Of a DNA stretch of 64,000 nt, positions 1-21,927 are shown piece after piece. The stretch is from Auanema rhodensis (lineage: Eukaryota > Animalia > Nematoda). Every line of letters begins with the position of its first letter. Position 1 is the stretch's first letter. The notes beneath the pieces were generated by a model, which was not told the origin of the DNA, searched no databases, and saw only the letters and a list, made by a program, of their open reading frames with translations. Location of the stretch: NCBI GenBank assembly GCA_964057225.1, contig OZ059897.1, positions 11,594,001-11,658,000 on the forward strand. Reading direction: 5' to 3'. The position numbers and the translations under genes were made by a program.

Positions 1-753
1 AATATATAAATATATTTTCATTTTATAATTTATATAAATATAAATAAAAATAAAAAATATAGAATATTATATTATAAATCGATATACATTCATTGTTTTT
101 GGTCTTATGCTTAAAGACGTTTTACCCATATCTTTCAGGTGTACCATTCAATTCATAGATTGAGAAGGATTTAGGTTATTTTGAGTACAGGATGAACACG
201 TATGGATGAAATTCCACTTGAGAATTACTTACAAATCCACATACTTTTCATATAATCAAAAAAGGATTATAGATGTGAATGGTAAAAACAAGTTAATCTT
301 ATAGGTTTATTTAATTCTTATATATCTACTTGAACTAATCTCATGTTCTTGAGAAGATTTTGAAGATGATCAAGTGAATACTTCATTTTGTCTTAATTCT
401 CATGAACTTTTCAACACTAAAACTAAGATAAATGATTTTAAGTGAATTACATATGATATGATTGACGTTAGATTAAACTAATAAGAAAAAACAACAATAG
501 AATTCTCACACAACTTATATTATCTACAAATTCTCTTACAAATTCATAATTTGTATTACGCATTGATATCTGTCATAAAATATGACGTAACTACAACACG
601 AGAATTGAAGGAATTGTTGCGCAATTCCATTTTTTCTTTTCAGAATTCATCGATATATAGTCTGTTGTTGTACTGTACTTTGAAATTGAGTTTTACCTAT
701 TATAATATTTTATACTAAAAATGGTTACTTCACATATTATTGAATGTTTCGAA

Positions 754-3231
754 AAAAAACGAGAATAAAATAGGAACAGATGTCGGAAGACTTGAAAACT
801 CAGCTAATTCTCTTTAATGATTCTCAAGATGCAGCTTAATTGACGGTTTCATCACTCAGTAGAAGCCGTTTTGCCTTTTTTTGCGCGATTCAGTCCATAA
901 GAAGATCTTCAGTGACCTTATAAGGAGTGCCGGCTGGATTATATACAATAGCAGTTCTGACTTTTGAAGAAATGAAAGCCGCCCATGTCTTTCAGGAAGA
1001 GCTGGCATTCATTAGAATTGAGATTAAGTTAAGTATGTGTATAAATATATATATAACCGCTTTTTTACTTAATAAGAAAAAAAAAGAGTTTAAACGTTTC
1101 ACGTGAACTACTATTGGCACAATATTGGATGTGAGTGAAATTAAGGGCATTTAAGGCTTTAAGATAATTTTTCCATTACATTTCCTCAAAATATGGGGTT
1201 TGAGGGATTTTTTTCATATTCTCTTGTATAGGTTAAAATAGAGACCGTTAATTATGGCTCAAGACACATAATTGTCGATTATTTCCGGATGATTGCGTAA
1301 CAAAGTGGGCAATTCGCAAGGTACTGTCGAACCATTCATCTTCGTTTATTCTTCAACGTTTTTGTAAAGCAAAAGAAGTTTTTGTTGTCAAATTTAGATA
1401 ATATTCATTTATATGACAAAGAAAACAAGGAGATTTAGTATAATTAAAGTAAAAAGCCCAATTATATTGAAACAACACTAAACTAATAGATGTTCGGGCG
1501 AAGGAGTTTTATCAGCTAATTAAGAATTCCATATTAATGCCATCGACGGTCATATTTGGTTTATTTGGTTAGCAATATATCCTAATAGTATTATGAGTAA
1601 AGATAATGCTTTACAGTTATGGGCAATCAATATTCTATATGTCATTTAATGCTTGACATCAAATTGCTAAGGCAGGAGCCAAGAGAATTGATGCAAACAG
1701 TATTCAGAGTACTTTATGGGTGTTTCATATATGCAAACGGTAAATGATATTCTGGAAATTAAATAAAATTTAAATTTGTCTTGCCTGCTCTTCTTTCAAC
1801 AGTGGCTTTGACTGAGTGATTCATCAAATGCCAAATAAGCCACGGATGATCGAGCCCAAATCGATTACAATTCATGAAGGAATGAGTAGGTCAACGAACG
1901 ATCATTCACAGACAAGCGCTTGTCTCTATAAGAGCTACAACCATCACGATTCTCCAAGAGCAGAGAAAGTCACTAGTGCAGGTTGTCACATATGTGGGAT
2001 ATTCCATGTGAAAGAAATCATAGAATTCAGAAGCGGGTTTATGAAGAATATATAAGATATGCCTCATTTGCTCTTTCAGTTTTATGTGTAGATGCCATTT
2101 AAATTTAATAATATCTTCAAATACTCACTTATCTAGTTATATCATAGTGGATTAATTATATTTAGATTCTCACCGTTAACAAACCGTTCTGTATACAGTG
2201 TCAAGATATAAATCTGCTGATCAAATATGAAGATGAGTGGAATCAGTAACTATAATTGCATAATGACAGTTATATAACAGTAACTCCATGACGTGTTGAA
2301 ATGTCAATATAGTGGTTACTGTAAATGCGATGAAGACTGGAAGCTGCCAGTAGTAGTGAATAACAAAGTTTACTAATACTGACCTATGTTCCGGTTGCAG
2401 TATACTTAGGACAAGCTCAGTAGATATAATCGGGCGATTTGAGGTAAAGATGAGCCGTCATTCCTTAGAGGAATATGCTCTGATGCCATCTAATTGTCAC
2501 TGTGGGTGGTAGGCGGCATTACAGTCAAAAGTCATTGAAAGAAGAAGCGCCACGTACGTGTGATGGCGTCATTTACTTCTACTGGAGTTGAAGCCTTCCA
2601 AAGTGGCAACAGATGTACGTAAATACTTGCTTCATAGTTGGATCTGTGTTGAGGTCGACGTATGTGCAAAGCACCTCAAGTGCTATTCCTGTGCCAACAG
2701 CTTGATATGGTATATGGTGACAACCAGCCATCAATGGTCAGAATGGTTAAAATTTTAAGCAATTTTCTCACATTAGTTACAACTTGAACGTTTTGACAAG
2801 GTGATGAGATAGCTAGAATCACTTGTTGATGTACTACATATGGACATCAAGTGTTAATTAGTATTATATACATATAGTTTATATAGTTAATGACATTAAT
2901 TGAATGAAATGTCCAAAGTGTTACCATCTGCCAAATCAAAAAGTTGCGGCAAAAAAGGAAAAATGACTACCATGAAGTGAATTTCATGTTAAGCCACATT
3001 CGAAGAAAACAATGACCTTGTCCTCTGACCAACTAATTAACATTCATTTTTCGGCATTTCTCTTTATTCATAATAGATGTAGTGTCAGATTTACAATTTT
3101 ATTTAATTATATTCATCTTGATGTTATAATATCTTGGAAAAACAAATGAAAAATAGAAGAATTGATTGAACATCAGTGATTTACAACATTCACTCTACTA
3201 TCCTTTATTACATTTCAATCCGACATCCTTT
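754..3231. repeat. Inverted repeat 1, left arm (2478 bp)
   Basis: Position x pairs with 7190-x. ORF 1816..2055(+) is mirrored exactly by 5135..5374(-). Both boundaries were checked by eye; the spacer is 3232-3958. Confidence 0.95.
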
Positions 3232-3277
3232 TATGATTGTATTATCTACTTCCACCTTGTCTGATCTAAAAAGTTCG

Positions 3278-3695
3278 TTGATTTTGATGTTCGTCGGCAA
3301 GATGAGAGACGTTTACCGAAAAGGAACAGATGAAAATGCAATCTACCGTAACCTATATATGTATTCGCGCATCATTAAGAATTTGAGTTAAAAAAAAGTT
3401 GAAGCATAGTAAAGATAAAAAGTAAAATATAGTTAAAAGAAGAAAATAAGAAAAGTGGTTAGTGGATATTATGAAACAAGCGGTAAATTGAAAGATAAAG
3501 TTGTCGTAACGAATATGTTTGATTAACATAGTAAGTATAGTAAGAATGGTAGAAATCAAGTAGTTATACCTAATAAGTTGGTTAAACATGTATTTTAACT
3601 ATGTAAATATAGTTGTTAAAGGAAGCCGACGATTAAGTATAAACAAAACTGCGAATTATACCAAAATGTGGATGTAATTATCAAAATAGCGTTTC
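3278..3695. repeat. 418-bp block present three times (3278-3695 = 6633-7050; inverted at 11908-12325); hlh-14 upstream sequence
   Basis: Identical ORF translations at 3353(-), 6708(-) and 12014(+); offset 3355; ends checked by eye. Confidence 0.93.
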
Positions 3696-3958
3696 AACTT
3701 TCATGTACTCAGGATGAGACATACGACTGAAGATAATATTGGATAGTTCAATCAAGAATGTAACACCTGCAGGTTGTCGATTTAGTTTTATAAAATAGGA
3801 TGAGGTGTCTGGCAGTTTAAGCCGTTTTGAACCAGCAGGAGATCAGATGTGACAAGTCTATTCATCAATTCTGTCTAACGATTTTCTGAAGCATTTTTTG
3901 AATTTGGAAATAGTGTTTTAACATATAAAACGATCAAATAAGTTAATTATATACATAT

Positions 3959-6436
3959 AAAGGATGTCGGATTGAAATGTAATAAAGGATAGTAGAGTGA
4001 ATGTTGTAAATCACTGATGTTCAATCAATTCTTCTATTTTTCATTTGTTTTTCCAAGATATTATAACATCAAGATGAATATAATTAAATAAAATTGTAAA
4101 TCTGACACTACATCTATTATGAATAAAGAGAAATGCCGAAAAATGAATGTTAATTAGTTGGTCAGAGGACAAGGTCATTGTTTTCTTCGAATGTGGCTTA
4201 ACATGAAATTCACTTCATGGTAGTCATTTTTCCTTTTTTGCCGCAACTTTTTGATTTGGCAGATGGTAACACTTTGGACATTTCATTCAATTAATGTCAT
4301 TAACTATATAAACTATATGTATATAATACTAATTAACACTTGATGTCCATATGTAGTACATCAACAAGTGATTCTAGCTATCTCATCACCTTGTCAAAAC
4401 GTTCAAGTTGTAACTAATGTGAGAAAATTGCTTAAAATTTTAACCATTCTGACCATTGATGGCTGGTTGTCACCATATACCATATCAAGCTGTTGGCACA
4501 GGAATAGCACTTGAGGTGCTTTGCACATACGTCGACCTCAACACAGATCCAACTATGAAGCAAGTATTTACGTACATCTGTTGCCACTTTGGAAGGCTTC
4601 AACTCCAGTAGAAGTAAATGACGCCATCACACGTACGTGGCGCTTCTTCTTTCAATGACTTTTGACTGTAATGCCGCCTACCACCCACAGTGACAATTAG
4701 ATGGCATCAGAGCATATTCCTCTAAGGAATGACGGCTCATCTTTACCTCAAATCGCCCGATTATATCTACTGAGCTTGTCCTAAGTATACTGCAACCGGA
4801 ACATAGGTCAGTATTAGTAAACTTTGTTATTCACTACTACTGGCAGCTTCCAGTCTTCATCGCATTTACAGTAACCACTATATTGACATTTCAACACGTC
4901 ATGGAGTTACTGTTATATAACTGTCATTATGCAATTATAGTTACTGATTCCACTCATCTTCATATTTGATCAGCAGATTTATATCTTGACACTGTATACA
5001 GAACGGTTTGTTAACGGTGAGAATCTAAATATAATTAATCCACTATGATATAACTAGATAAGTGAGTATTTGAAGATATTATTAAATTTAAATGGCATCT
5101 ACACATAAAACTGAAAGAGCAAATGAGGCATATCTTATATATTCTTCATAAACCCGCTTCTGAATTCTATGATTTCTTTCACATGGAATATCCCACATAT
5201 GTGACAACCTGCACTAGTGACTTTCTCTGCTCTTGGAGAATCGTGATGGTTGTAGCTCTTATAGAGACAAGCGCTTGTCTGTGAATGATCGTTCGTTGAC
5301 CTACTCATTCCTTCATGAATTGTAATCGATTTGGGCTCGATCATCCGTGGCTTATTTGGCATTTGATGAATCACTCAGTCAAAGCCACTGTTGAAAGAAG
5401 AGCAGGCAAGACAAATTTAAATTTTATTTAATTTCCAGAATATCATTTACCGTTTGCATATATGAAACACCCATAAAGTACTCTGAATACTGTTTGCATC
5501 AATTCTCTTGGCTCCTGCCTTAGCAATTTGATGTCAAGCATTAAATGACATATAGAATATTGATTGCCCATAACTGTAAAGCATTATCTTTACTCATAAT
5601 ACTATTAGGATATATTGCTAACCAAATAAACCAAATATGACCGTCGATGGCATTAATATGGAATTCTTAATTAGCTGATAAAACTCCTTCGCCCGAACAT
5701 CTATTAGTTTAGTGTTGTTTCAATATAATTGGGCTTTTTACTTTAATTATACTAAATCTCCTTGTTTTCTTTGTCATATAAATGAATATTATCTAAATTT
5801 GACAACAAAAACTTCTTTTGCTTTACAAAAACGTTGAAGAATAAACGAAGATGAATGGTTCGACAGTACCTTGCGAATTGCCCACTTTGTTACGCAATCA
5901 TCCGGAAATAATCGACAATTATGTGTCTTGAGCCATAATTAACGGTCTCTATTTTAACCTATACAAGAGAATATGAAAAAAATCCCTCAAACCCCATATT
6001 TTGAGGAAATGTAATGGAAAAATTATCTTAAAGCCTTAAATGCCCTTAATTTCACTCACATCCAATATTGTGCCAATAGTAGTTCACGTGAAACGTTTAA
6101 ACTCTTTTTTTTTCTTATTAAGTAAAAAAGCGGTTATATATATATTTATACACATACTTAACTTAATCTCAATTCTAATGAATGCCAGCTCTTCCTGAAA
6201 GACATGGGCGGCTTTCATTTCTTCAAAAGTCAGAACTGCTATTGTATATAATCCAGCCGGCACTCCTTATAAGGTCACTGAAGATCTTCTTATGGACTGA
6301 ATCGCGCAAAAAAAGGCAAAACGGCTTCTACTGAGTGATGAAACCGTCAATTAAGCTGCATCTTGAGAATCATTAAAGAGAATTAGCTGAGTTTTCAAGT
6401 CTTCCGACATCTGTTCCTATTTTATTCTCGTTTTTT
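3959..6436. repeat. Inverted repeat 1, right arm (2478 bp)
   Basis: Reverse complement of 754-3231; no mismatch seen in the stretches compared. Confidence 0.95.
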
Positions 6437-6559
6437 ATAGATCTCAAACTATTTTTTAAATCTCTTTGTGTTACAATTTCAGTATAATTAATGCTCCATG
6501 GGGTAGTTTTCACTTTTTTTAATTAAAAATATCTCATAAACTTGAAAAACGAATTAAAG

Positions 6560-8248
6560 CAAGGTTAAAATAGAAATAAAATGAAACTATATAAGAAATA
6601 AGTAAAATAAATAAAGTGCGGTAAACGAATTTTTGATTTTGATGTTCGTCGGCAAGATGAGAGACGTTTACCGAAAAGGAACAGATGAAAATGCAATCTA
6701 CCGTAACCTATATATGTATTCGCGCATCATTAAGAATTTGAGTTAAAAAAAAGTTGAAGCATAGTAAAGATAAAAAGTAAAATATAGTTAAAAGAAGAAA
6801 ATAAGAAAAGTGGTTAGTGGATATTATGAAACAAGCGGTAAATTGAAAGATAAAGTTGTCGTAACGAATATGTTTGATTAACATAGTAAGTATAGTAAGA
6901 ATGGTAGAAATCAAGTAGTTATACCTAATAAGTTGGTTAAACATGTATTTTAACTATGTAAATATAGTTGTTAAAGGAAGCCGACGATTAAGTATAAACA
7001 AAACTGCGAATTATACCAAAATGTGGATGTAATTATCAAAATAGCGTTTCTTTTAATAATAAGTTGATTGAAAGAGATAAAGTAATCTTAACCATGCTCA
7101 GTTATTAATCTTATAGTTATCTTCATATAAAAACATCTGCTTCTTATATCATATCGTCTTGATCATCCATATAAACGATACATATGCTTTTCTTATCTGA
7201 TGAATAGTTTAAATCTATCTTACCTTACACTCTTGTTTCAAGATATGTTTGAGCAATAGTGAAAGGATTAACAAGCTTTTAAGCTTCAAATGTCCTTGAA
7301 CATCCTTATAATTCACATTTTTTCTAACCAGCTTCGTTTCAGAAACAACTTATGGAACCATCTGCTTTGCTCTCTTTTAGTCACATGTAATACCGTAACC
7401 TTAAGTTTACTATTCTTTAATTAATTGAATTATAACATTTGAATTTTCATATATTTTGATATAATATCCATCTGACTCGAATATTTAGTTTACTCAAGTT
7501 TTACAAAAAACTTGGTTTCCGCCCCTATTTGACCTTTCTCCATGCCCGACCCTCCGCCCATCACTTGCAGGATAGTACCGCCTATATGGTCTGTCAGTTG
7601 TATGTTCTAGTCTTGCGAACGTCACTCCAACATTTCATTTTTCACCTTCTTGTAATCATTCTGATGTTACTAATCATCTTATTTTTCAGAATTAATATTT
7701 CCTATATCATGTCTCCTAAGTGTAAACCAACTAAGAATGCTCAACTTCGTAGAAATGAGAGGGAACGCAAACGAGTTCATCAGGTAGACTTGTTTGACTA
7801 TCGTCCTAACCTACTTATCTCATCTAATATAGGTAAACGATGGATTTGATCGTCTTCGTTGTCGAGTTCCTAAGGCTGTAACTAACAAGAAACTTAGCAA
7901 AGCTGATACATTACGTGAAGCTGTCAAATATATTCAATATCTTCAAACTATGTTAACGAATGATTATACATCATCTTCAAATGGTATTTTTCGATTTTTC
8001 CCAATTCTCTTTTTAATTTTTTAATTTTCAGCATTCAATAGCTTGTGTCAATCTCCACGTATTTCTCCAGAACATGTTGATGATGTTTCATCTTCTGAAC
8101 ACTATTACTCTGAATCGAATGAATTATTTTTCCCTTCATCAAATTTATCGAATTTATCCAAAATATCTCCAATGTCATTCAATTATCCTTTGAACTATTC
8201 ATGTTCTTCCGTTGCATCTACCTTATCAGCATCAACATCGTCCCTTGA
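6560..8248. repeat. Inverted repeat 2, left arm (1689 bp): promoter plus 5' part of bHLH gene copy 1
   Basis: Position x pairs with 18958-x (ORFs 7529+/11109-, 6708-/12014+). One mismatch seen (A6798 vs C12160). Confidence 0.95.
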
Positions 8249-8438
8249 TAATGCTTCATCCGTAGCAACTGTTTCTGTTACTTCCTCACCGGAAAGCTAT
8301 TCTCCAAACCAATCAGGAAACAATTCAATAACAACACAATCATTGCCAGTATTTTACCAATACCAAAGTAAGTTTTTACAATCATTCGAACATTTTAATT
8401 AATCATTATCATTTTCAGTGCTCCCATCTGGAATGTGA
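7709..8438 (+). CDS. hlh-14: Achaete-scute family proneural bHLH transcription factor, copy 1
   Basis: Exons 7709-7783, 7833-7983, 8032-8367, 8419-8438 (all GT-AG). Spliced protein [63 protein letters not shown]... [13 protein letters not shown] and [14 protein letters not shown] match what I recall of C. elegans HLH-14. A TTTTCAG acceptor lies 20 nt before the ATG. Confidence 0.85.
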
Positions 8439-9125
8439 AATTGTTAACACAGATAGAATGATCTTTTATTCTTTTTTTTGGATTTTATTGTCATATTTCT
8501 ATTATATTTAAATATTTACGGGTTTCATATTTATATAATCAAATAAACATTTTTCTAATTTAACTGTTTTATTTGTTGTCTTCAAAATAATTTCTATGAC
8601 CTTAGATGCATAAATCTGGCATTAAATATATGAAAAAGCAATTAACAATATTTTATACAAGACCGTTTTTTGTTAAGGTGCTTTCAACTGGGTAATTACC
8701 TGCTTTATCCTGGATTCGTGTTTGTTCTCTCATTTTCTGTTCCTTTTCTCTCATTTGTTCATTTACTCATTAATACTCATTATGGTTCAGCCATTTCTCT
8801 CTCCCTCTCACTGCTTATTCGACCTCTCATGCTCTCTTTCTCATCATTACAGTCTTTTGGCTGTCTGACTGGAATTGTACATACATTCTTGATGCTCTTG
8901 TAGTCGTCCCAGAAGCCCAGCTGTTCCTTGCCAAAGATATTAACGCTATTAAATTTCTATTTGCCTAGCATTTCTTCATGCCACCATATTTGATTAGTTA
9001 ACGACGCTCAATACTACATTTTAAGAAGTCAAGCACATGATAAAATTTCCGCAAACAAGGTATGCTCTGCTAATTAACACTGTCCTAATTTTTTCTATCC
9101 ATTTATATAGAAAAACATTCAAAGG

Positions 9126-10172
9126 ACGACTGAAGATAATATTGGATAGTTCAATCAAGAATGTAACACCTGCAGGTTGTCGATTTAGTTTTATAAAATA
9201 GGATGAGGTGTCTGGCAGTTTAAGCCGTTTTGAACCAGCAGGAGATCAGATGTGACAAGTCTATTCATCAATTCTGTCTAACGATTTTCTGAAGCATTTT
9301 TTGAATTTGGAAATAGTGTTTTAACATATAAAACGATCAAATAAGTTAATTATATACATATAAAGGATGTCGGATTGAAATGTAATAAAGGATAGTAGAG
9401 TGAATGTTGTAAATCACTGATGTTCAATCAATTCTTCTATTTTTCATTTGTTTTTCCAAGATATTATAACATCAAGATGAATATAATTAAATAAAATTGT
9501 AAATCTGACACTACATCTATTATGAATAAAGAGAAATGCCGAAAAATGAATGTTAATTAGTTGGTCAGAGGACAAGGTCATTGTTTTCTTCGAATGTGGC
9601 TTAACATGAAATTCACTTCATGGTAGCCATTTTTCCTTTTTTGCCGCAACTTTTTGATTTGGCAGATGGTAACACTTTGGACATTTCATTCAATTAATGT
9701 CATTAACTATATAAACTATATGTATATAATACTAATTAACACTTGATGTCCATATGTAGTACATCAACAAGTGATTCTAGCTATCTCATCACCTTGTCAA
9801 AACGTTCAAGTTGTAACTAATGTGAGAAAATTGCTTAAAATTTTAACCATTCTGACCATTGATGGCTGGTTGTCACCATATACCATATCAAGCTGTTGGC
9901 ACAGGAATAGCACTTGAGGTGCTTTGCACATACGTCGACCTCAACACAGATCCAACTATGAAGCAAGTATTTACGTACATCTGTTGCCACTTTGGAAGGC
10001 TTCAACTCCAGTAGAAGTAAATGACGCCATCACACGTACGTGGCGCTTCTTCTTTCAATGACTTTTGACTGTAATGCCGCCTACCACCCACAGTGACAAT
10101 TAGATGGCATCAGAGCATATTCCTCTAAGGAATGACGGCTCATCTTTACCTCAAATCGCCCGATTATATCTA
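9126..10172. repeat. 1047-bp direct copy of 3723-4769, lying between the two bHLH genes
   Basis: Offset 5403. Starts acgactgaagataatatt and ends cgattatatcta. One substitution seen (T4224 vs C9627). Confidence 0.93.
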
Positions 10173-10606
10173 TTAATACTGTTGTATTACTTTGTATTAT
10201 TGGATATTAACAGAATATTTTTGTAGTTAAACAGTCAATCATATATGTACATGTATATATAATGTGTATATTAACAATATGTATGTCCATTCAAAATATA
10301 TTTAATTTCCTTACGCATTTTTAATACCATAAATCAAATTGCATGAGAATTTCCAACTGCAATCGAAGGAATAATTAAAGAATATTTAATTTTTCTTGTC
10401 ACGAAAACTGAAAACGACACATAGGTTTTTCATTGTATTGTTACATGAATGAACAATATTATAGTAAATATTTTATATTTTTCAAAAAAAAAATTACAAT
10501 ATTAACAATAAAACTTGTAATATGAAAAATAGAAAAATGAGATCACACCGTAATAAGTAATGTAATAAATTATCGTATTCTCTATGTGACATTATGAATA
10601 ATGACT

Positions 10607-11249
10607 TCAAAATATTTTTGAATGGTATAAATATTGGTTTGCATCGTTCGAAACAAATTGTGTGTTGGGGTGGACAGGTGCACATGATGTAGTTGTTAAT
10701 GAGGTATTCTCAAGGGACGATGTTGATGCTGATAAGGTAGATGCAACGGAAGAACATGAATAGTTCAAAGGATAATTGAATGACATTGGAGATATTTTGG
10801 ATAAATTCGATAAATTTGATGAAGGGAAAAATAATTCATTCGATTCAGAGTAATAGTGTTCAGAAGATGAAACATCATCAACATGTTCTGGAGAAATACG
10901 TGGAGATTGACACAAGCTATTGAATGCTGAAAATTAAAAAATTAAAAAGAGAATTGGGAAAAATCGAAAAATACCATTTGAAGATGATGTATAATCATTC
11001 GTTAACATAGTTTGAAGATATTGAATATATTTGACAGCTTCACGTAATGTATCAGCTTTGCTAAGTTTCTTGTTAGTTACAGCCTTAGGAACTCGACAAC
11101 GAAGACGATCAAATCCATCGTTTACCTATATTAGATGAGATAAGTAGGTTAGGACGATAGTCAAACAAGTCTACCTGATGAACTCGTTTGCGTTCCCTCT
11201 CATTTCTACGAAGTTGAGCATTCTTAGTTGGTTTACACTTAGGAGACAT
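10607..11249 (-). CDS. hlh-14: Achaete-scute family bHLH, copy 2 (same N-terminus and bHLH, different C-terminal tail)
   Basis: Exons 11249-11175, 11125-10975, 10926-10607. Identical to copy 1 up to ...STSSL, then ENTSLTTTSCAPVHPNTQFVSNDANQYLYHSKIF*. Confidence 0.8.
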
Positions 11250-12398
11250 GATATAGGAAATATTAATTCTGAAAAATAAGATGATTAGTAACATCAGAAT
11301 GATTACAAGAAGGTGAAAAATGAAATGTTGGAGTGACGTTCGCAAGACTAGAACATACAACTGACAGACCATATAGGCGGTACTATCCTGCAAGTGATGG
11401 GCGGAGGGTCGGGCATGGAGAAAGGTCAAATAGGGGCGGAAACCAAGTTTTTTGTAAAACTTGAGTAAACTAAATATTCGAGTCAGATGGATATTATATC
11501 AAAATATATGAAAATTCAAATGTTATAATTCAATTAATTAAAGAATAGTAAACTTAAGGTTACGGTATTACATGTGACTAAAAGAGAGCAAAGCAGATGG
11601 TTCCATAAGTTGTTTCTGAAACGAAGCTGGTTAGAAAAAATGTGAATTATAAGGATGTTCAAGGACATTTGAAGCTTAAAAGCTTGTTAATCCTTTCACT
11701 ATTGCTCAAACATATCTTGAAACAAGAGTGTAAGGTAAGATAGATTTAAACTATTCATCAGATAAGAAAAGCATATGTATCGTTTATATGGATGATCAAG
11801 ACGATATGATATAAGAAGCAGATGTTTTTATATGAAGATAACTATAAGATTAATAACTGAGCATGGTTAAGATTACTTTATCTCTTTCAATCAACTTATT
11901 ATTAAAAGAAACGCTATTTTGATAATTACATCCACATTTTGGTATAATTCGCAGTTTTGTTTATACTTAATCGTCGGCTTCCTTTAACAACTATATTTAC
12001 ATAGTTAAAATACATGTTTAACCAACTTATTAGGTATAACTACTTGATTTCTACCATTCTTACTATACTTACTATGTTAATCAAACATATTCGTTACGAC
12101 AACTTTATCTTTCAATTTACCGCTTGTTTCATAATATCCACTAACCACTTTTCTTATTTCCTTCTTTTAACTATATTTTACTTTTTATCTTTACTATGCT
12201 TCAACTTTTTTTTAACTCAAATTCTTAATGATGCGCGAATACATATATAGGTTACGGTAGATTGCATTTTCATCTGTTCCTTTTCGGTAAACGTCTCTCA
12301 TCTTGCCGACGAACATCAAAATCAAAAATTCGTTTACCGCACTTTATTTATTTTACTTATTTCTTATATAGTTTCATTTTATTTCTATTTTAACCTTG
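10710..12398. repeat. Inverted repeat 2, right arm (1689 bp): promoter plus 5' part of bHLH gene copy 2
   Basis: Reverse complement of 6560-8248. Confidence 0.95.
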
Positions 12399-12454
12399 AG
12401 AAAAATTGGAACAAATTAATTGAAAGTAACAAATGTTTCCAGTGCCTTACGTTG

Positions 12455-12579
12455 AACACCTGTTAAATGTCAATCGTTTTATAAAAGAATAATGATGAAG
12501 ATGTGGTGTTATGGGATGAGGTGTCTGCCAGTTCGATTCGTTTAAATCAGCAGGAGATCAGATGTGACAAGTCTATTCA
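12455..12579. promoter_or_regulatory. Conserved non-coding module with E-boxes (CACCTG, CAGATG); diverged copy of 3762-3864 and 9165-9267
   Basis: Shares AACACCTG, a 14-nt block GGATGAGGTGTCTG and a 32-nt identical block CAGCAGGAGATCAGATGTGACAAGTCTATTCA with the other copies, while the sequence between blocks has diverged. The enhancer role is inference. Confidence 0.55.
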
Positions 12580-12729
12580 ATTGACCAAATTCTATATACC
12601 TTCTTTCTATATCTTTCTATGTATATATACACATTTTATAAACCAATTTTGATGGTATTTCTTGCGCAACACTACATACATTCAATAATACATGAAAAAA
12701 TATAATATAACAGGATTTCTTAGCTTTTT

Positions 12730-15529
12730 TCATTCTTCTTGTCGATTTTTCAAAATACGTTTAATTCTATTAGCCTTGGATTTTTCAACAATATACACAA
12801 ACAATGATAGACATGCCAAAAATCCTATAAAAATATTATGGTAAATAGGTGAAAACATCTGTTACCGAGCAATATTCCCATCCAGAAAATTACTGTTATG
12901 GTCTTGAAACTGCCTGCAGTTTGTTCCCTGAATATTTGCTTTTGTAATTGCGTAATTTCAAATACAGTACTCTTGGTCTTTAAGTATAATAACAACTTTA
13001 GTTCCATCATGTGTTGTAGCTTCAATTCTTTTATTCATATCTGATAGCATTAGCTTGATTAAAAGTATATCCTTTCCATTGGGATGCAATTGCCGAGAAT
13101 GATCAAGACATTCACGGTTACTTTTCATTTCAATCTTGACTAATGATATTTTCCATTTAACCTTCAAATATATTTTAAATATTATTATTATTTTTAATAT
13201 TAAATATATAATATATACCCCGCGATCAGTATTAAATATTTTTGAATCTAATCGTATACGATAGCTTTCACCTTCACTTACCCTGAAGTGGAAATTGTTA
13301 AGATTATATTTCTATTTAGCCATAAACTTGAAGAAAGATTTTCTTTCTTTCACAGTAAGAATTGTCAGATTAACATTACTACATTCATCAGCATCTTCTC
13401 CATGTTCTTCTTCTTCAGTTTCTTCATTTTTCAAACGAATACCTTTACATTTTGCCAAAAGGTAACAATCTTTTTTTTGTGGATCATTTTGACATGATTT
13501 TTCTTCAATATACATTCCAATTCCATCATATTTTGTTATTCCATTATTTTCAAAAAATCTTCTTCTTAAATCCTTAAATAAATAAAATGAAATACTATAC
13601 TATACTTACTATATAATCACTTTTATCAAATTATTAACATCAGTTGTTTCAAAAAATGTTGAATAAACTGGTATGCCATACTCTTTATAAGGTGAAATTG
13701 TTAAAAATCTTTGAAGTGAATTAGGAGTTATCTATAAATATAAATATAATAAAATTATCTTATTCATTTATAATATAACCTCTTTTGATGGATTTATTTT
13801 CATAATAGATAAATATCCCGTTCGAACTTTTCTTGAAATCACAGATTTACTTTAAAAAAAACATTGATAATAATATGTCTTATTTGTATATATTTAACTT
13901 AATATCTAATAAATTATATTTAACCTTACCAATTTCTTGTTGAAGCGAATTGACCACATATTTCTGTTGAACAGCAACAAGCCGAGCAACAACTGAAATT
14001 TCTCCATGACACATCTATCTTAATAAAAAAAAATATTCTATTATTTAATAGTATTACAACCTTCAAATTATTGCTTACATCTTCATATGGCCGAAAGCTA
14101 TAATCCCACGTTTCCAAATTTTTAAACTTTGTTGATTTGGATTCTGTAAGAAAATTATTAATATACTAAAATATTATATACAAACCAGGATGAATATCAG
14201 TTTTCATATGATCTATATTAACTATAACACCTGTATTTATGTTTTCTTCGTCTAAATTCTGAATTAAAAGTTATATTACAGCGAAAAAAGTTGAGACTTA
14301 CAACAAAACATTGATATGTCATTCCTCCATAAAAAATTCTTTCGAATTTACTAAACAATGGTTTATCCTTGTTTTTATAAACTTGGTGGGGCATATATAA
14401 TGGTTTGCTTATCTTAAATATATCATTGTTAAAGTTTTATAATTAATAATAAAAAAACTTGAAATCGCCCTCCTCGATGATTATGTAATGGTGCATGATT
14501 AGTTGTCGAATATCCATAGTGTTCAGCTATATGTGAATTATACATACTAAGTCCTTCAAATTATTACATAGTATATTATATATAATAAATATAACTATAC
14601 CCATCTGATCTAATAATTTGTGAAGAGAAAAAAAATGAGATAATAATGGTGTTGAACCATCAGAATTTTCACGTTTAGCATCAGAATCATAATAAAATTC
14701 ACGAAGCGAACGGCCGAAATAGTTAATCATATACTATAGTATATTTCATTAAAATACCGTTTATAATCCATATAGATATTTGCAAGATGTCCAGTTAAAT
14801 TCTTGAAACACGAATAACATGGTATCTATAAATAAACAAAAATAATAAGAATCTAATCAATAGCTATGAGTACTTCATAAGGAAATTCAGAAAATTGATA
14901 CATTTGCACAATTCGCTTTCCTAGTCTTTGTTGATAGTTACTATTACATCTAAAAGCTTATATAAAAAGTTTTTTTAAGAAAACAAACTAATTTACATGT
15001 CATCTCCTGCATATTCAACTGTTCTATGTACTTTGTTTGACAATATATATGCTAAAAAACCATCAAGCTCCACAAATGATTGTTTCTGATTATGAGCCAC
15101 ATCAGTCCAATATTCAAATAGATCATCATTTGCATTGAAATAACTAATATTCGTATATTTACGAATCACAACACTTAAATATGAATTTCTTGTATATCAA
15201 TATAAAATATTATATTTTAACTCTTTATCTCCATCATCATGTAAGCTGATTGCAAAGCTTGAGCCATCAAAACGTGGAGGAAATTGATACGACATATACG
15301 TTCGGGTTCGTGGAATACGTAAAAGATCCACATGAGCATTTTGAATTTCTACGATTTGAATATAATTGAGAAAAATAAAAATGAAGCAAATTAATCGATA
15401 CCATTAACATAAGATGAAGAAACTACAATTGAATATCTGTAAATAAATAATTTATATAAAATATGTAATAAATAATCAAACATACGTTCTAAAATTTAAA
15501 AAAAGTAAACATAGAATTAATAAATTCAT
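12730..15529 (-). CDS. Cys-rich type-I membrane protein with a putative Ig-like segment (FAM187/SPE-45/SPE-51-like candidate)
   Basis: About 17 exons splice into one frame: signal peptide MNLLILCLLFLNF, ...GGMTYQCFV..., VSWRNFSCCSACCCSTEICG...RKVRTGYL...YGIPVYS, a TM segment TITVIFWMGILLGFLACLSLFVYIV and a basic tail KSKANRIKRILKNRQEE*. One intron needs a GG acceptor (14714-14757). The family call is tentative. Confidence 0.7.
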
Positions 15530-15938: not shown

Positions 15939-18900
15939 TCATGCTAAAATGTATTGATTATTTGGTTCATACTTTGAAATCTTTTCTTACCTCTGCCATA
16001 TCCTAAGGAAACACTGTCATGAGGAACTACGACAGGTGCTACTGTTGTGGGAACTTCTGGTTCAGTTGCAGGGGCTCCATCTCCAGAATGTGTTGATTTC
16101 TGTAACATAGTTACTTTTTTCTTATATTTATCTTGAAACTTACAATTGTTACAGCTGGAGGAATTGGTTCTGATGTAGTAAAAGCTACAAATGTTGTGGT
16201 TTCTTCCATTTCATCAACAATAGTTGGTGAATCGCTTGAATGTATTGCTGGAAGTGAAGAATCGATGTCTTCTGTAGATGGTCCTTCGCTAATACGTTGT
16301 GGTTCATCGTTAGAGGATCCGTCTTCCGAGCTTCCTTCAAGCTTTACGTCCTTGTTATGAACATTAGACACATTCTCTTCGTGACTGCTGATCTTCTCGA
16401 TTTCGGGTTTATGAGTAGATGTAGGTTCTTCATATCCAGATAACACTTGTTCTGGTTTTACTTCTTCATGAACAATATCTAAAGGCTCGGGTTGATGAGC
16501 TGGGGCTCCAACAATAGTTTTTTGAGTAGTAGAAGCAATAGTTGTTTCTTCATTTTCTGCATTAGATGGAACGATTGTAGTCTCTAATTGTATATCTTGG
16601 GTGATATCTGCGGAAACTGTGGTCCATGCGTCATTTACTGAATCCAGAGTAACTGGAGTGGTTGCTACTTCATTGGGTTCAGAGGAAGGAGCTGTGTGCT
16701 CATCGACTGGAGCTTCAGAAGTGATTGGTTCGGTATGAGCCTCAGTCACGGTGTCCAAAGGAGCAGAGGTGGTTTCAGTTTCCTTTGGCTCAGATGGAGC
16801 AGCATAGCTATCTTCGGCGGATGGAGCTGTGGGCTCGTCGACTGGAGCTTCAGAAGTGATTGGTTCGGTGTGAGCCTCAGTTACGGTATCCAAAGGAGCG
16901 GAGGTGGTTTCAGTTTCCTTTGGCTCAGATGGAGCAGAATAGCTATCTTCGGCGGATGGAACAGTGTGCTCATCGACTGGAGCTTCAGAAGTGATTGGTT
17001 CGGTATGAGCCTCAGTCACGGTGTCCAAAGGAGCGGAGGTGGTTTCAGTTTCCTTTGGCTCAGATGGAGCAGAATAGCTATCTTCGGCAGATGAAACAGT
17101 GTGCTCATCGACTGGAGCTTCAGAAGTGATTGGTTCGGTATGAGCCTCAGTCACGGTGTCCAAAGGAGCGGAGGTGGTTTCAGTTTCCTTTGGCTCAGAT
17201 GGAGCAGAATAGCTATCTTCGGCGGATGGAACAGTGTGCTCATCGACTGGAGCTTCAGAAGTGATTGGTTCGGTATGAGCCTCAGTCACGGTGTCCAAAG
17301 GAGCAGAGGTGGTTTCAGTTTCCTTTGGCTCAGATGGAGCAGAATAGCTATCTTCGGCGGATGGAACAGTGTGTTCATCGACTGGAGCTTCAGAAGTGAT
17401 TGGTTCGGTATGAGCCTCAGTCACGGTGTCCAAAGGAGCAGAGGTGGTTTCAGTTTCCTTTGGCTCAGATGGAGCAGAATAGCTATCTTCGGCGGATGGA
17501 ACAGTGTGCTCATCGACTGGAGCTTCAGAAGTGATTGGTTCGGTGTGAGCCTGAGTCACGGTGTCCAAAGGAGCGGAGGTGGTTTCAGTTTCCTTTGGCT
17601 CAGATGGAGCAGAATAGCTATCTTCGGCGGATGGAGCTGTGGGCTCGTCGACTGGAGCTTCAGAAGTGATTGGTTCGGTGTGAGCCTCAGTTACGGTATC
17701 CAAAGGAGCGGAGGTGGTTTCAGTTTCCTTTGGCTCAGATGGAGCAGAATAGCTATCTTCGGCAGATGGAACAGTGTGCTCATCGACTGGAGCTTCAGAA
17801 GTGATTGGTTCGGTATGAGCCTCAGTCACGGTATCCAAAGGAGCGGAGGTGGTTTCAGTTTCCTTTGGCTCAGATGGAGCAGAATAGCTATCTTCGGTAG
17901 ATGGAACAGTGTGCTCATCGACTGGAGCTTCAGTAGTGATTGATTCGGTGTGAGCCTCAGTTACGGTTTCCAAAGGAGCGGAGGTGGTTTCAGTTTCCTT
18001 TGGCTCAGATGAGGGGACAGCATAATTGTTTTCCAAAGTTGGAACAGAAGCCACAGGATTCACAGTAGTTGGAGAAGATGTAGTGGGTATGTTGATGGCT
18101 TTGTCAACTGGATGAGTTTGAGCTGTATTATCCTCGCCATATCCCAAATCAGAAGGAGAAGAAGCTGGTCCAACTTCGGGAATATCAGTGTTATGGCCGG
18201 CTTTTCCGTAGTCTGAAGAGTCTGAAGGAGATAATTTCATTGGAGTAGTATTGAGTTTATATGGAATTGTTGTATACTTTGTGTTAGGCTTGGAATAGGA
18301 TTTTGAGGTAGCTGTTGTTAATTGGGAATGAACAGAAGTCGACTTTGAAGGATGAGATGTTGATAGCTTGATAATCTTTGTTGTTTTTGTGAAAGTTGTT
18401 TTTGATTTAGTTGGCTTTGAAGTAGCTTTTGTCATTTTTTTCGTGATTGGAAGCATCGTCGAGGTCTTTTGGGAGAAAGTTGTACTTTTGGTTGTTCTAA
18501 TGCTTGGCTGCTGGGTTGTTGTCACATTTTTCAATGTGGTAGGTTGTTTTTCGGTAGTAGAGGTGGTAGGACTAATAGTTTTAGTTGATTTAATCATAGT
18601 CGTAGTTGCTAAAGTTGTATTAGTTATATGCGAAACAGTATTTGGCGAAGAAGTTGAGTTAGAAGCAATAGTTGTACTTATTTCAGGAGTAGTAGGTGAA
18701 GCTGGTTCTGGTATTTCAATAGGAGGTATTGAAGAAGTTTGAATAGTAGGAATAGTTGAAGTACCTTGTACTTTTTCATCCTGAACTTCTCTCCTAAACT
18801 TGAAAATGTCAAGGAAGTTGTCATCGTTAATCTCTTTAATTGGATATATCCCAGTTGGCTGTAACGGATCGAACTAATACTTTCAAACATTTTCTCAATA

Positions 18901-19084
18901 CCGTATTTATAGCCAGTTCGCCATTGATAAGTTGAATCTTCTTTAACCAAGCTAACGTTTGTTCAATACGATTCCTAGATTTATAAATTGTTTTAAATCA
19001 ATCAAGTTTCGAATTCTCTTACTGAATTGGGGTAGGCGCAGCATTGATTCCTACGATGCAAACTAGTAGCAAGGTCCACCTCAT
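15939..19084 (-). CDS. Secreted mucin-like Thr/Ser/Pro/Glu-rich protein
   Basis: Signal peptide MRWTLLLVCIVGINA right after a TTTAG acceptor. Two short introns, then a long exon including the 828-aa ORF with a Thr/Lys-rich part and acidic repeats. The last exons end ...SLGYGRA* (3' end less certain). Confidence 0.85.
16680..18012 (-). repeat. Coding tandem repeat, about 10 x 135 bp (45 aa SAPSEPKETETTSAPLDTVTEAHTEPITSEAPVDEHTVPSAEDSY)
   Basis: Period 135 measured from agaatagcta at 16936 and 17071; 10 units counted in the translation. Confidence 0.95.
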
Positions 19085-21927
19085 TCTAAATATGAATTTA
19101 TTAAATTATACATTAATAATGTAATATAGATAGTATTATCATTAGCTGATATAATATGAAAATATTTTATATATGAAGCAAATTAGAACGATAAGCTGAA
19201 TAAAAGGAACTATGAATGTTAATAAAGCGGTTATGATTTCTGCTTTTATAGATAGGCATTGAGTTTTTTTGGATAAGGACATAAGGTACCCTCCACCCCC
19301 TTTCGGTTCAGCTTGTATCATAGCTTAGTTTGGATTTGGATGAAACCTGATGTAATTTTTTATTTTCACAACTTAAATAAGAATAACGTTATCGATGTAC
19401 ATATGTATATACATATATAGATATAAAGATATAAAAAAACTGTCATATTTTATTTTTTTATGAAATTACAAAATAGTACATGCTTTATAGAGAGAAATAA
19501 GATAAACATAACGTATATCTTGAATTATTAAAAAAAACGAAAGTGATGATATGTGGAAAAGCAAAAAAATGAGTAAACAGATGAATACTACAAAGAATAT
19601 TTAGAAAAATCGAAAATAAAACACCTATGTTGCCAAATTAGCTGAGTGTTTAGCTTTTTTGCTCAAAATGTTCCGGAAAAAAATAAAAAACACAAAATAA
19701 TCAATCATTGTTCAAGTAGTCAACTAGTTCGGAAGATCCAAAGCTGAAACTTATTGCGTACGTTATGTGACATATTTGAGGCAACTGAGAACAGATTTCC
19801 AGCGATAAAACTTATTCAAATCGCATGTCCTATATGATCTCAAACTTCGATTAATTTTTCTTCGCTTCAAACTTCTCGTACAACATTTCAAGACTACAGT
19901 TTCATTCAAGATTTGTTGTTTGAATTTCGAAAACAACAACTAACTCAGTCAGGTCTAGGCTTTCAAAAAGGCATTTCTCATATTCTTGTAAGTTTTCTCA
20001 ATTAGCTATAACAATGTTCGTTATATTATATCTAATTTGGAAGATAGGTTTCTTAACATTCAAGCCTGTTGCTAAACATATGTAAATCTCATGGTACTTC
20101 CAGTTTGTTTCTTTCGTTAAAAGCTTCCATAAAGCTTGCAGGTAATTGTAACGACCCGTAAAAAACTACAGATAAATTAGAAAGTGATCTAGTTTGATGT
20201 ACTTCCTAACGCAGCTTTTTTTTGAATATCCATCCACAATATTGCAGTTTTTGTGATAAGGGATAAATATAACTAAAAGAAGTAAACACTGAAAGCAAAT
20301 CATGAATGTTTTAAGAAGTAAAGCAAAAAATTTAATTTCATGACCATCTTATTATTATTATTATTATTATGCCATCAAAATCATATATACTTTTATTCAA
20401 TATCTTTCACATAAAACAACCTGAATACATGGATAGATCAGGGATAAAAGTGACAAAAAGGGCAATGTCCTAACCAGTTCGGCGGGTTTGAAAAAAGACG
20501 ATAAGCAAGGAACATTTCTTTTTATTTCGTTAAACCTGCCAAACATTCGCATGCTTTCACGTATTAAGTAATTAGCCATTTCAGTACAATTATTATCAAA
20601 AAAAGAAGTTTTACTGAAGTAATTCAAGAGCGATAGTTTCTTTACACTAATAAGAAAATGAAAATTCTTTTTATACTTCATAATAATTAGCTTTGATGTT
20701 GAACATAATGTACAAGCAAAAATTTAATTTGTATCGTCAGATAGAAAATAAATTAATCGCAATTTGATGTGTCCTTCAGATTGCAAGGATCCTGAGTGTG
20801 AATTTCATTCCTGAAATAGAGGATGTATATAATTTTTATTTATTTCTTGGTTTAAACTTTCTGAATAATATAAGACTCGATTAGCTCTTCTGTATCTTAT
20901 TACGATATCATCTATAGTGAAATGAATCAGAAACAATATTATACATTTGAAGCTTTCTAATCGTCATTCAATCAAGCTTGAAATAAATTTTTTTGTTAAG
21001 GAAGCGCAGCGTAGGCAGGAAGTTCTCTTACAGAAAGACAACTGGACAACCGACTGTTTTTATACTTATACAGATCGAATAGATCGTTATCTTTTTGCTT
21101 ATACCCATCAAATAAATGATGGCACTTATATATCGGAATTAGTAACTTGTCACAGTTATCGTAATGCGTTTATTAAAAAGTAAAAAACCAATAAAATATA
21201 ACACTAACTTTACCGTATATTATATATTTTCTATTATATAATTATAATTAATATTATAACAAATATATATAATGTTTAATAAATAATGTTTTGTAAACTT
21301 CATGTATACGCAATTAAACGTGCCAATTGAAAACGCCATGCCACAGGTTTACTATGCATTCGTTTTGCAAATATATTTTGATATGCTTATGTTATATTAG
21401 GTATTACGGTTAATTTTTGTTCAAAGTAAGCGATTTTCCTGATTTCAACTCAAGAAAATGTTTTCAATTGAATGATTTAGACACCAGTTCACAGGGAGTT
21501 GACTATTTAAAAAACGAGAGAAGAAATGATTTCAAAAATTTCGAGAAGCACGTGCGTTTCTTTGAACTAATGTCATTCTTGTATTGCATTCACCAACTGT
21601 TTAACAAATTATATCAGCAATCTTGACCATTTAACAGGCGGTTTATTAAACTATGGTGTTAGAGAAGTCTGTTAACCAGACCTTACGTCTAGCACATGTG
21701 AGTGCTTCGACCTATCCAATAGGCTCTCTTGTATTATTGTATTTCAATGTGTTTTAGTTATTTTGTTCTGATAATGATCCGTTCATTGCTGTATCGTCTC
21801 TCCTAAAAAATAATTGAGCTGCATGTTGTTTTGACAATTATTTTGTGAATGAAAATTACTTCTCAGTTAGAGTATTTGTACTTTGAAGACATTATGTTAA
21901 ATCACACAAAAGTAATCGAACTTTAGA

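Follow-up and report, generated by a model that had tools for sequence, protein, structure and literature searches.

A palindrome of ~5.8 kb in the genome of the nematode Auanema rhodensis carries two convergent, tail-to-tail basic helix-loop-helix (bHLH) genes, reasonably named hlh-14 on the basis of their sequence, that share a promoter and DNA-binding domain and end in different C-terminal tails. The palindrome (hereafter palindrome B) lies in a window of 64,000 nucleotides (nt), which is the whole stretch of DNA analyzed here (NCBI GenBank assembly GCA_964057225.1, contig OZ059897.1, positions 11,594,001 to 11,658,000 of the forward strand); all coordinates below are those of the window. 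Both copies are transcribed and properly spliced. We lean toward the view that they are older hlh-14 paralogs in which a non-reciprocal transfer has overwritten the head, a view to which we give roughly an even chance.

The gene pair and its palindrome

Arm 1 of palindrome B (6560-8248, plus strand) pairs with arm 2 (10710-12398, minus strand) in inverted orientation, 6560-8248 against 12398-10710, over 1689 bp. A base-by-base check found one mismatch, at 6798/12160, and an independent inverted-repeat search recovered 6560-8259 and 10699-12398. This identity exceeds chance by far. Arm 1 comprises 1149 bp of upstream DNA, exons 1 and 2, introns 1 and 2, and the opening 217 nt of hlh-14 copy 1 exon 3 (two thirds of that exon), and arm 2 is its mirror copy with the head of hlh-14 copy 2, position 12160 (vs. 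6798) being the sole difference. Beyond the arm end at 8248, positions 8249, 8253, and 8255 are the next to mismatch. The junction falls inside a codon of exon 3 (GAT vs. GAG), and both reading frames stay open and in frame across it. A first-pass annotation of the window, made from the sequence alone, had described two convergent bHLH genes sharing 1689 bp with one mismatch, an abrupt end of identity in mid-exon, and the continuation of both frames, and our coordinates reproduce this description in full.

The spacer between the arms (8249-10709, 2461 bp) holds both tails and the 3' untranslated regions (UTRs), a 1047-bp copy of 3723-4769, and a transcript that is weak and spliced. Palindrome-type conversion systems are marked by inverted arms that are nearly identical and enclose a unique spacer, and palindrome B has this arrangement. 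The boundary of the duplication is intragenic and the open reading frame (ORF) is completed by DNA that was not duplicated, with tail 2 being unique within the window. The coding sequence of copy 1 (7709-8438, plus strand) has exons at 7709-7783, 7833-7983, 8032-8367, and 8419-8438 and encodes 193 amino acids, whereas that of copy 2 (10607-11249, minus strand) has exons at 11249-11175, 11125-10975, and 10926-10607 and encodes 181 amino acids; both models are supported by complementary DNA (cDNA). Tail 1 (8249-8438, plus strand), the unique coding end of copy 1, comprises 46 amino acids, is interrupted by an intron at 8368-8418, and contains the motif SYSPNQ, and tail 2 (10607-10709, minus strand), the unique coding end of copy 2, comprises 34 amino acids and is intronless. 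The 34 residues and the extra intron are as first annotated; the length of 49 residues given earlier for tail 1 becomes 46 by the gene model.

Both copies have the same HLH domain sequence, which matches Pfam HLH (PF00010) at residues 13-63 with E = 8e-20 and 70.8 bits against a cut-off of 20.7. The closest database protein is from Auanema sp. JU1783 (58% identity), followed by proteins of Heterorhabditis, strongylids, and Caenorhabditis HLH-14. In a maximum-likelihood achaete-scute tree that left out the C. elegans paralogs hlh-4, hlh-6, and hlh-19, the window protein grouped with Auanema JU1783, Heterorhabditis, C. bovis, the Caenorhabditis HLH-14 clade, and strongylids, and it fell outside the C. 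elegans HLH-3 group (support for that group, 89/94). This placement makes the hlh-14 label reasonable. Within the bHLH domain, the window protein is 64% identical to HLH-14 and 55% identical to HLH-3, and the JU1783 gene has both head intron positions in common with the window genes. In C. elegans, hlh-14 is not known to have a second copy and is a key proneural gene of neuroblast lineages. No other bHLH genes were found in the window, and a literature search found no paper naming hlh-14 together with Auanema.

Transcripts and copy number

Four public sequencing runs, all available as short-read contigs, were compared with 6400-10740, which covers one arm and the spacer. Two of these runs (X12 and X13) hold contigs that lack introns and are therefore cDNA. 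The copy 1 mRNA is represented by one X13 contig over 7688-7781, 7831-7982, 8031-8367, and 8419-8519 with GT..AG joints, which also confirms the extra intron of tail 1 (8368-8418). The copy 2 mRNA is represented by one X12 contig over 7688-7781, 7831-7982, and 8031-8248 that continues on the opposite strand over 10709-10546; this contig extends 61 nt beyond the stop codon, which indicates a 3' UTR of at least 61 nt. Tail 2, whose expression the first-pass annotation had put forward as a point to check, is thus seen in RNA (X12), as is tail 1 (X13). The identical promoters would predict co-expression of both copies.

Several further observations concern these transcripts. In the X12 assembly the tail 2 path alone was retained, and in the X13 assembly that of tail 1 alone, with contig depths that are equal (17.5 and 17.6). 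This hints at copy ratios that depend on the sample, or may reflect assembler chance, and the contigs say nothing on abundance. Both cDNA contigs start at 7688, adjoining a consensus TTTTCAG acceptor (7683-7690) that lies 20 nt upstream of the ATG, a position compatible with trans-splicing of both mRNAs. The weak transcript of the spacer, which lies within 8895-9128, was detected in both cDNA runs at a depth of ~2-3, with 8897-9057 joined to 9109-9128 on the plus strand at a GT..AG intron. Its ORF spans only 37 codons, and the transcript may represent either a copy 1 isoform with an extended 3' UTR or non-coding RNA.

Contigs of X8, a DNA run without a source flag, also contain both inner junctions (8220-8489 and 10541-10738). 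The k-mer depth of X8 was ~800-1300 on unique parts (one copy), ~1700-1800 on the arms of palindrome B (two copies), and 3155 on 9362-10172 (three copies), and the depth ratios in X9, a DNA run of a different study, were as in X8. These depths fit two copies of the arm. DNA runs labelled as coming from other organisms are identical to the window at this locus. The mirror layout over 5.8 kb rests on the assembly, the inner junctions, and the depths.

If the assembly had stitched together two alleles or a fold-back chimeric read, the palindrome would be unreal. The run evidence comprises short-read contigs, none of which spans 6.4-12.6 kb, and a 2:1 depth ratio taken alone is also compatible with haplotype-specific tails. 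However, we consider such an artefact highly improbable: the inner junctions are present both in X8 DNA and in the cDNA of a different study, the 1x, 2x, and 3x depth steps agree with the copy numbers of the assembly in two studies, and a fold-back would not give rise to a novel tail that is in frame and present in RNA. Moreover, the two copies have flanking sequences that bear no relation to each other on either side, unlike alleles, and for this reason we rejected tail 1 and tail 2 as alleles of one gene.

The two tails and the origin of the shared heads

The two proteins have in common the bHLH domain and 72 residues after it (Ala76 to Leu147), and beyond this point the first-pass annotation had called their tails unrelated. 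That description is probably wrong, as the tails have an exon-like composition in common and a collinear, in-register similarity that extends ~30 nt (15 codons) beyond the junction, with p values of ~0.01-0.05. The base composition of tail 2 (A.37, C.26, G.09, T.28) is close to that of tail 1 (A.35, C.27, G.10, T.28), and the C content falls to.10 directly past the tail 2 stop. Among local windows of 103 nt, 2.7% are as C-rich as tail 2 and 0.2% are also as G-poor. In-register identity past the junction is 15/30 and 25/60 (p = 0.02-0.05 with in-frame, composition-matched nulls), and a junction-anchored collinear DNA alignment of the tails yielded p = 0.028 and 0.013 with codon-shuffled nulls; its score was reached by none of 78 real-sequence controls. 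In-register similarity at the protein level covers the first 7-15 residues of the tails (p = 0.007-0.045). Tail 2 closes with codons reading YLYHSKIF, which are similar to the end of tail 1 when read unspliced (YQYQSKFL) and to the end of the JU1783 ortholog (YLYQNNIL), and a DNA test of the tail 2 end against the 3' end of the JU1783 ortholog gave p = 0.017. We infer from these comparisons that the tails are probably related after all.

If so, the tails would be strongly diverged descendants of one ancestral last exon, and the duplication would then be older than the identity of the arms. The 1689-bp head, from an upstream element to the middle of exon 3, would recently have been overwritten in one copy by the other (whichever was the donor, and perhaps more than once) through gene conversion over a long tract or through templated repair, acting between the inverted repeats. 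The endpoint of this putative transfer, 8248/10710, would lie inside coding sequence that is diverged yet homologous. The exon-like composition of tail 2 and the similarity past the junction lend modest support to older paralogs with homogenized heads, which is the part of the first-pass interpretation that we retain; its unrelated tails and its diverged enhancer copy are parts that we do not, and the two effector or degron tails that it proposed are conjectural.

A number of results weigh against this reading. The tests of tail homology are all marginal, many were run, and they are mutually correlated. Local alignments of tail 1 and tail 2 were not significant for either DNA (p = 0.05-0.08) or protein (p = 0.23), nor were the junction-anchored protein alignment of the tails (p = 0.15) and a three-way gapless test that included the JU1783 tail (p = 0.085). 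A sensitive blastn search past the arm ends gave no significant homology in either direction, and outside the outer arm boundary no similarity is left (9/30 and 15/60 in register). Imperfect microhomology that served a template switch is another possible source of the short similarity that adjoins the junction. A tract of 1689 bp that includes 1.1 kb of non-coding DNA is long when compared to conversion tracts between C. elegans paralogs, which have a mean of 117 bp, range from 12 to 2958 bp, and mostly fall between 50 and 200 bp (PMC3966223). The neighborhood contains other sharply bounded copies with 100% identity that are best read as fresh duplications. Finally, the genomes of two more distant relatives, C. 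bovis and N. brasiliensis, each have one hlh-14 copy within 10 kb on either side.

Several of these results are what would be expected from a very recent partial inverted duplication in which the 1689 bp of promoter and head were copied 2.4 kb downstream to create a chimeric gene, possibly in the same burst of template switching that produced the adjacent palindrome A and the pieces copied between the two palindromes (described below). Tail 2 would then be pre-existing, unrelated DNA with a 34-codon frame that is open by chance, and ORFs of at least 33 codons do occur by chance at 10-15% of positions. We regard this as a strong rival with a substantial, somewhat less than even, probability. 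It would account for the sharp boundaries throughout and the single mismatch, the absence of significant blastn homology past either arm end, a locus that is a mosaic of copies at ≥ 99.9% identity, the single-copy state of the relatives, and a copy of the locus that lacks the gene and carries 27 nt of filler, of the kind typical of replicative template switching; it also sits well with the usual shortness of conversion tracts in Caenorhabditis (PMC3966223). However, the composition of tail 2 is unlike that of local non-coding DNA, and its similarity to tail 1, in register and collinear, as well as to the JU1783 tail would together be improbable if tail 2 were random DNA that had been captured. 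The two explanations are partly reconcilable: if the convergent pair is old, the head of one copy might have been replaced during the recent burst of templated repair that also produced the remaining mosaic.

Comparisons of the tails with other sequences had the following results. Similarity of each tail to six ortholog tails was not significant under composition-preserving shuffles; tail 2 against the C. auriculariae tail reached p = 0.0115, a single nominal match among 12 tests on which we do not rely. Close relatives of exon 3 plus tail 2 were sought by a word-indexed search, which returned no match, and by an exhaustive phmmer search, which returned only an unrelated low-complexity protein of 1781 amino acids. 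A 100-nt match (67%) of the tail 2 end with 19044-19143 was dismissed, as its alignment leaves one short shared motif.

The tails offer a candidate functional difference between the copies. Nematode HLH-14 proteins have a conserved C-terminal S-Y-S-P-x-Q motif that is SYSPNQ in tail 1 and SYSPTQ or NYSPPQ in Caenorhabditis HLH-14, and that is missing from tail 2. Copy 1 has six Ser-Pro sites, including two extra ones, whereas copy 2 has four; copy 1 may thus have retained two extra Ser-Pro sites and the SYSP motif that copy 2 lacks. In vertebrate Ascl1, phosphorylation at multiple Ser-Pro sites tunes activity, and by analogy it is plausible that the two copies differ in regulation or stability.

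The JU1783 ortholog is located on a contig of 1321 bp (CALQYR020003349.1) that begins ~50-80 nt inside the homologous outer arm boundary and ends in the coding tail without a stop codon. Judging from these end points, its extent matches what a collapsed two-copy repeat would give. A further proposal, that the palindrome is an old module maintained by conversion, common to the Auanema group, and with tails used differentially between samples, seems to us unlikely. If true, it would represent one DNA-binding specificity with two regulated C-terminal outputs.

Known systems and the surrounding sequence

The palindromes of primate sex chromosomes, for which arm-to-arm conversion and persistence across species are documented, likewise have near-identical inverted arms, a unique spacer, and genes in mirror pairs; however, they extend over tens to hundreds of kb, whereas the hlh-14 palindrome is on the kb scale. 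Young duplicates of C. elegans in the surveys of Katju and Lynch are reportedly 1-2 kb in typical length, often inverted, and often partial or chimeric. The hlh-14 pair resembles the partial and chimeric ones among them in its length of ~1.7 kb, inverted orientation, intragenic breakpoint, ORF that takes in a unique 3' end, and divergence close to zero. It differs in that those duplicates are said to recruit arbitrary flanking DNA, whereas tail 2 looks like hlh-14 coding sequence.

Among nematodes, the hsp-16 modules of C. elegans (hsp16-1/hsp16-48) form a near-perfect inverted repeat and are taken as the product of duplication and gene conversion (reviewed in PMC3966223). As in palindrome B, a gene pair is arranged about a short unique spacer, and the identity extends through introns and flanks. 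However, the hsp-16 arms contain whole genes around a spacer of 416 bp, whereas in the hlh-14 pair the boundary cuts an exon, the C-termini differ, and 2.4 kb of spacer separate the arms. Adjacent Caenorhabditis paralogs for which interlocus gene conversion has been described are col-12/col-13 and fog-2/ftr-1 (PMC3966223). As would apply here, homogenization in these pairs is non-reciprocal and partial, has endpoints inside genes, and includes introns, but the tracts are mostly 50-200 bp, in contrast to a putative hlh-14 tract of 1689 bp that includes the whole promoter. Near-perfect inverted gene pairs and partial homogenization of paralogs are therefore already established in nematodes, and the hlh-14 pair, although a clean example of either half-gene homogenization or partial duplication, has precedents.

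The role of the tail in Achaete-scute proteins is poorly understood, and two versions of hlh-14 with the same promoter and DNA-binding domain and with different C-termini and Ser-Pro counts amount to a natural experiment on it. For genome evolution, the pair is a compact example of half-gene homogenization or of the birth of a chimeric gene, set amid two adjacent perfect palindromes that exchange pieces. The classes of mechanism are well known; the value lies in a clear, expressed, and testable case in a proneural gene rather than in a new principle.

Palindrome A (754-6436) is separated from palindrome B by 123 bp in a self-comparison of the window; neither it nor the pieces copied between the palindromes had been noted in the first-pass annotation. 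Its arms (754-3235 and 3954-6436) align over 2483 bp with no mismatches and one gap around a spacer of 718 bp (3236-3953), and no clear ORF, Rfam match, or tRNA match was found in them; Rfam and tRNA scans of 1-14000 as a whole likewise returned no match. At the center of palindrome A is the gene-less copy of the hlh-14 locus (3278-4769, plus strand), which consists of 3278-3695, the 27-nt filler, and 3723-4769 and is missing the gene body 7051-9125 (2075 bp). The first piece is identical to 6633-7050 (100% over 418 bp) and one base off the arm 2 copy, consistent with site 12160, whereas 3723-4769 matches 9126-10172 with one mismatch. In addition, 2421-3235 is an inverted copy of 9357-10172. 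The joint 7050/9126 with its 27 filler letters is present in contigs of two DNA runs, and the boundaries of the cross-copied pieces are all abrupt. Judged by these patterns, which are like those of replicative template switching, the locus appears to be a hotspot of very recent duplicative rearrangement. Position 9627, within the cross-copied part of the palindrome B spacer, is C in the window and T in collapsed contigs of X8 and X9; of the three copies of the segment, only the one in the spacer has this variant.

The conserved upstream element (6640-6735, plus strand) is a segment of ~100 bp that is also found at the Auanema sp. JU1783 ortholog. It occurs in three copies, at 6640-6735, mirrored at ~12223-12318, and, because the 418-bp piece includes it, at ~3285-3380. 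A second, 134-bp element has two identical copies (9198-9325 and 3795-3922) and one copy that is 71% identical to them (12511-12643, plus strand), located 113 bp outside arm 2. The latter is probably what the first-pass annotation had taken for a diverged enhancer copy just outside the arm; it copies spacer sequence (9198-9325), not arm sequence. The k-mer depth at 9155-9299 in X8 (4987) is above that of the three-copy segment, and the 134-bp element is for this reason probably a dispersed repeat with more copies elsewhere in the genome.

Farther along the window, 16111-18597 on the minus strand contains an intronless ORF of 828 codons rich in Ser, Thr, Pro, and Glu. It includes a tandem array (16678-18011) of about ten 45-residue repeats that have a period of 135 bp and are 92-97% identical, and its predicted product resembles a mucin-like secreted protein.

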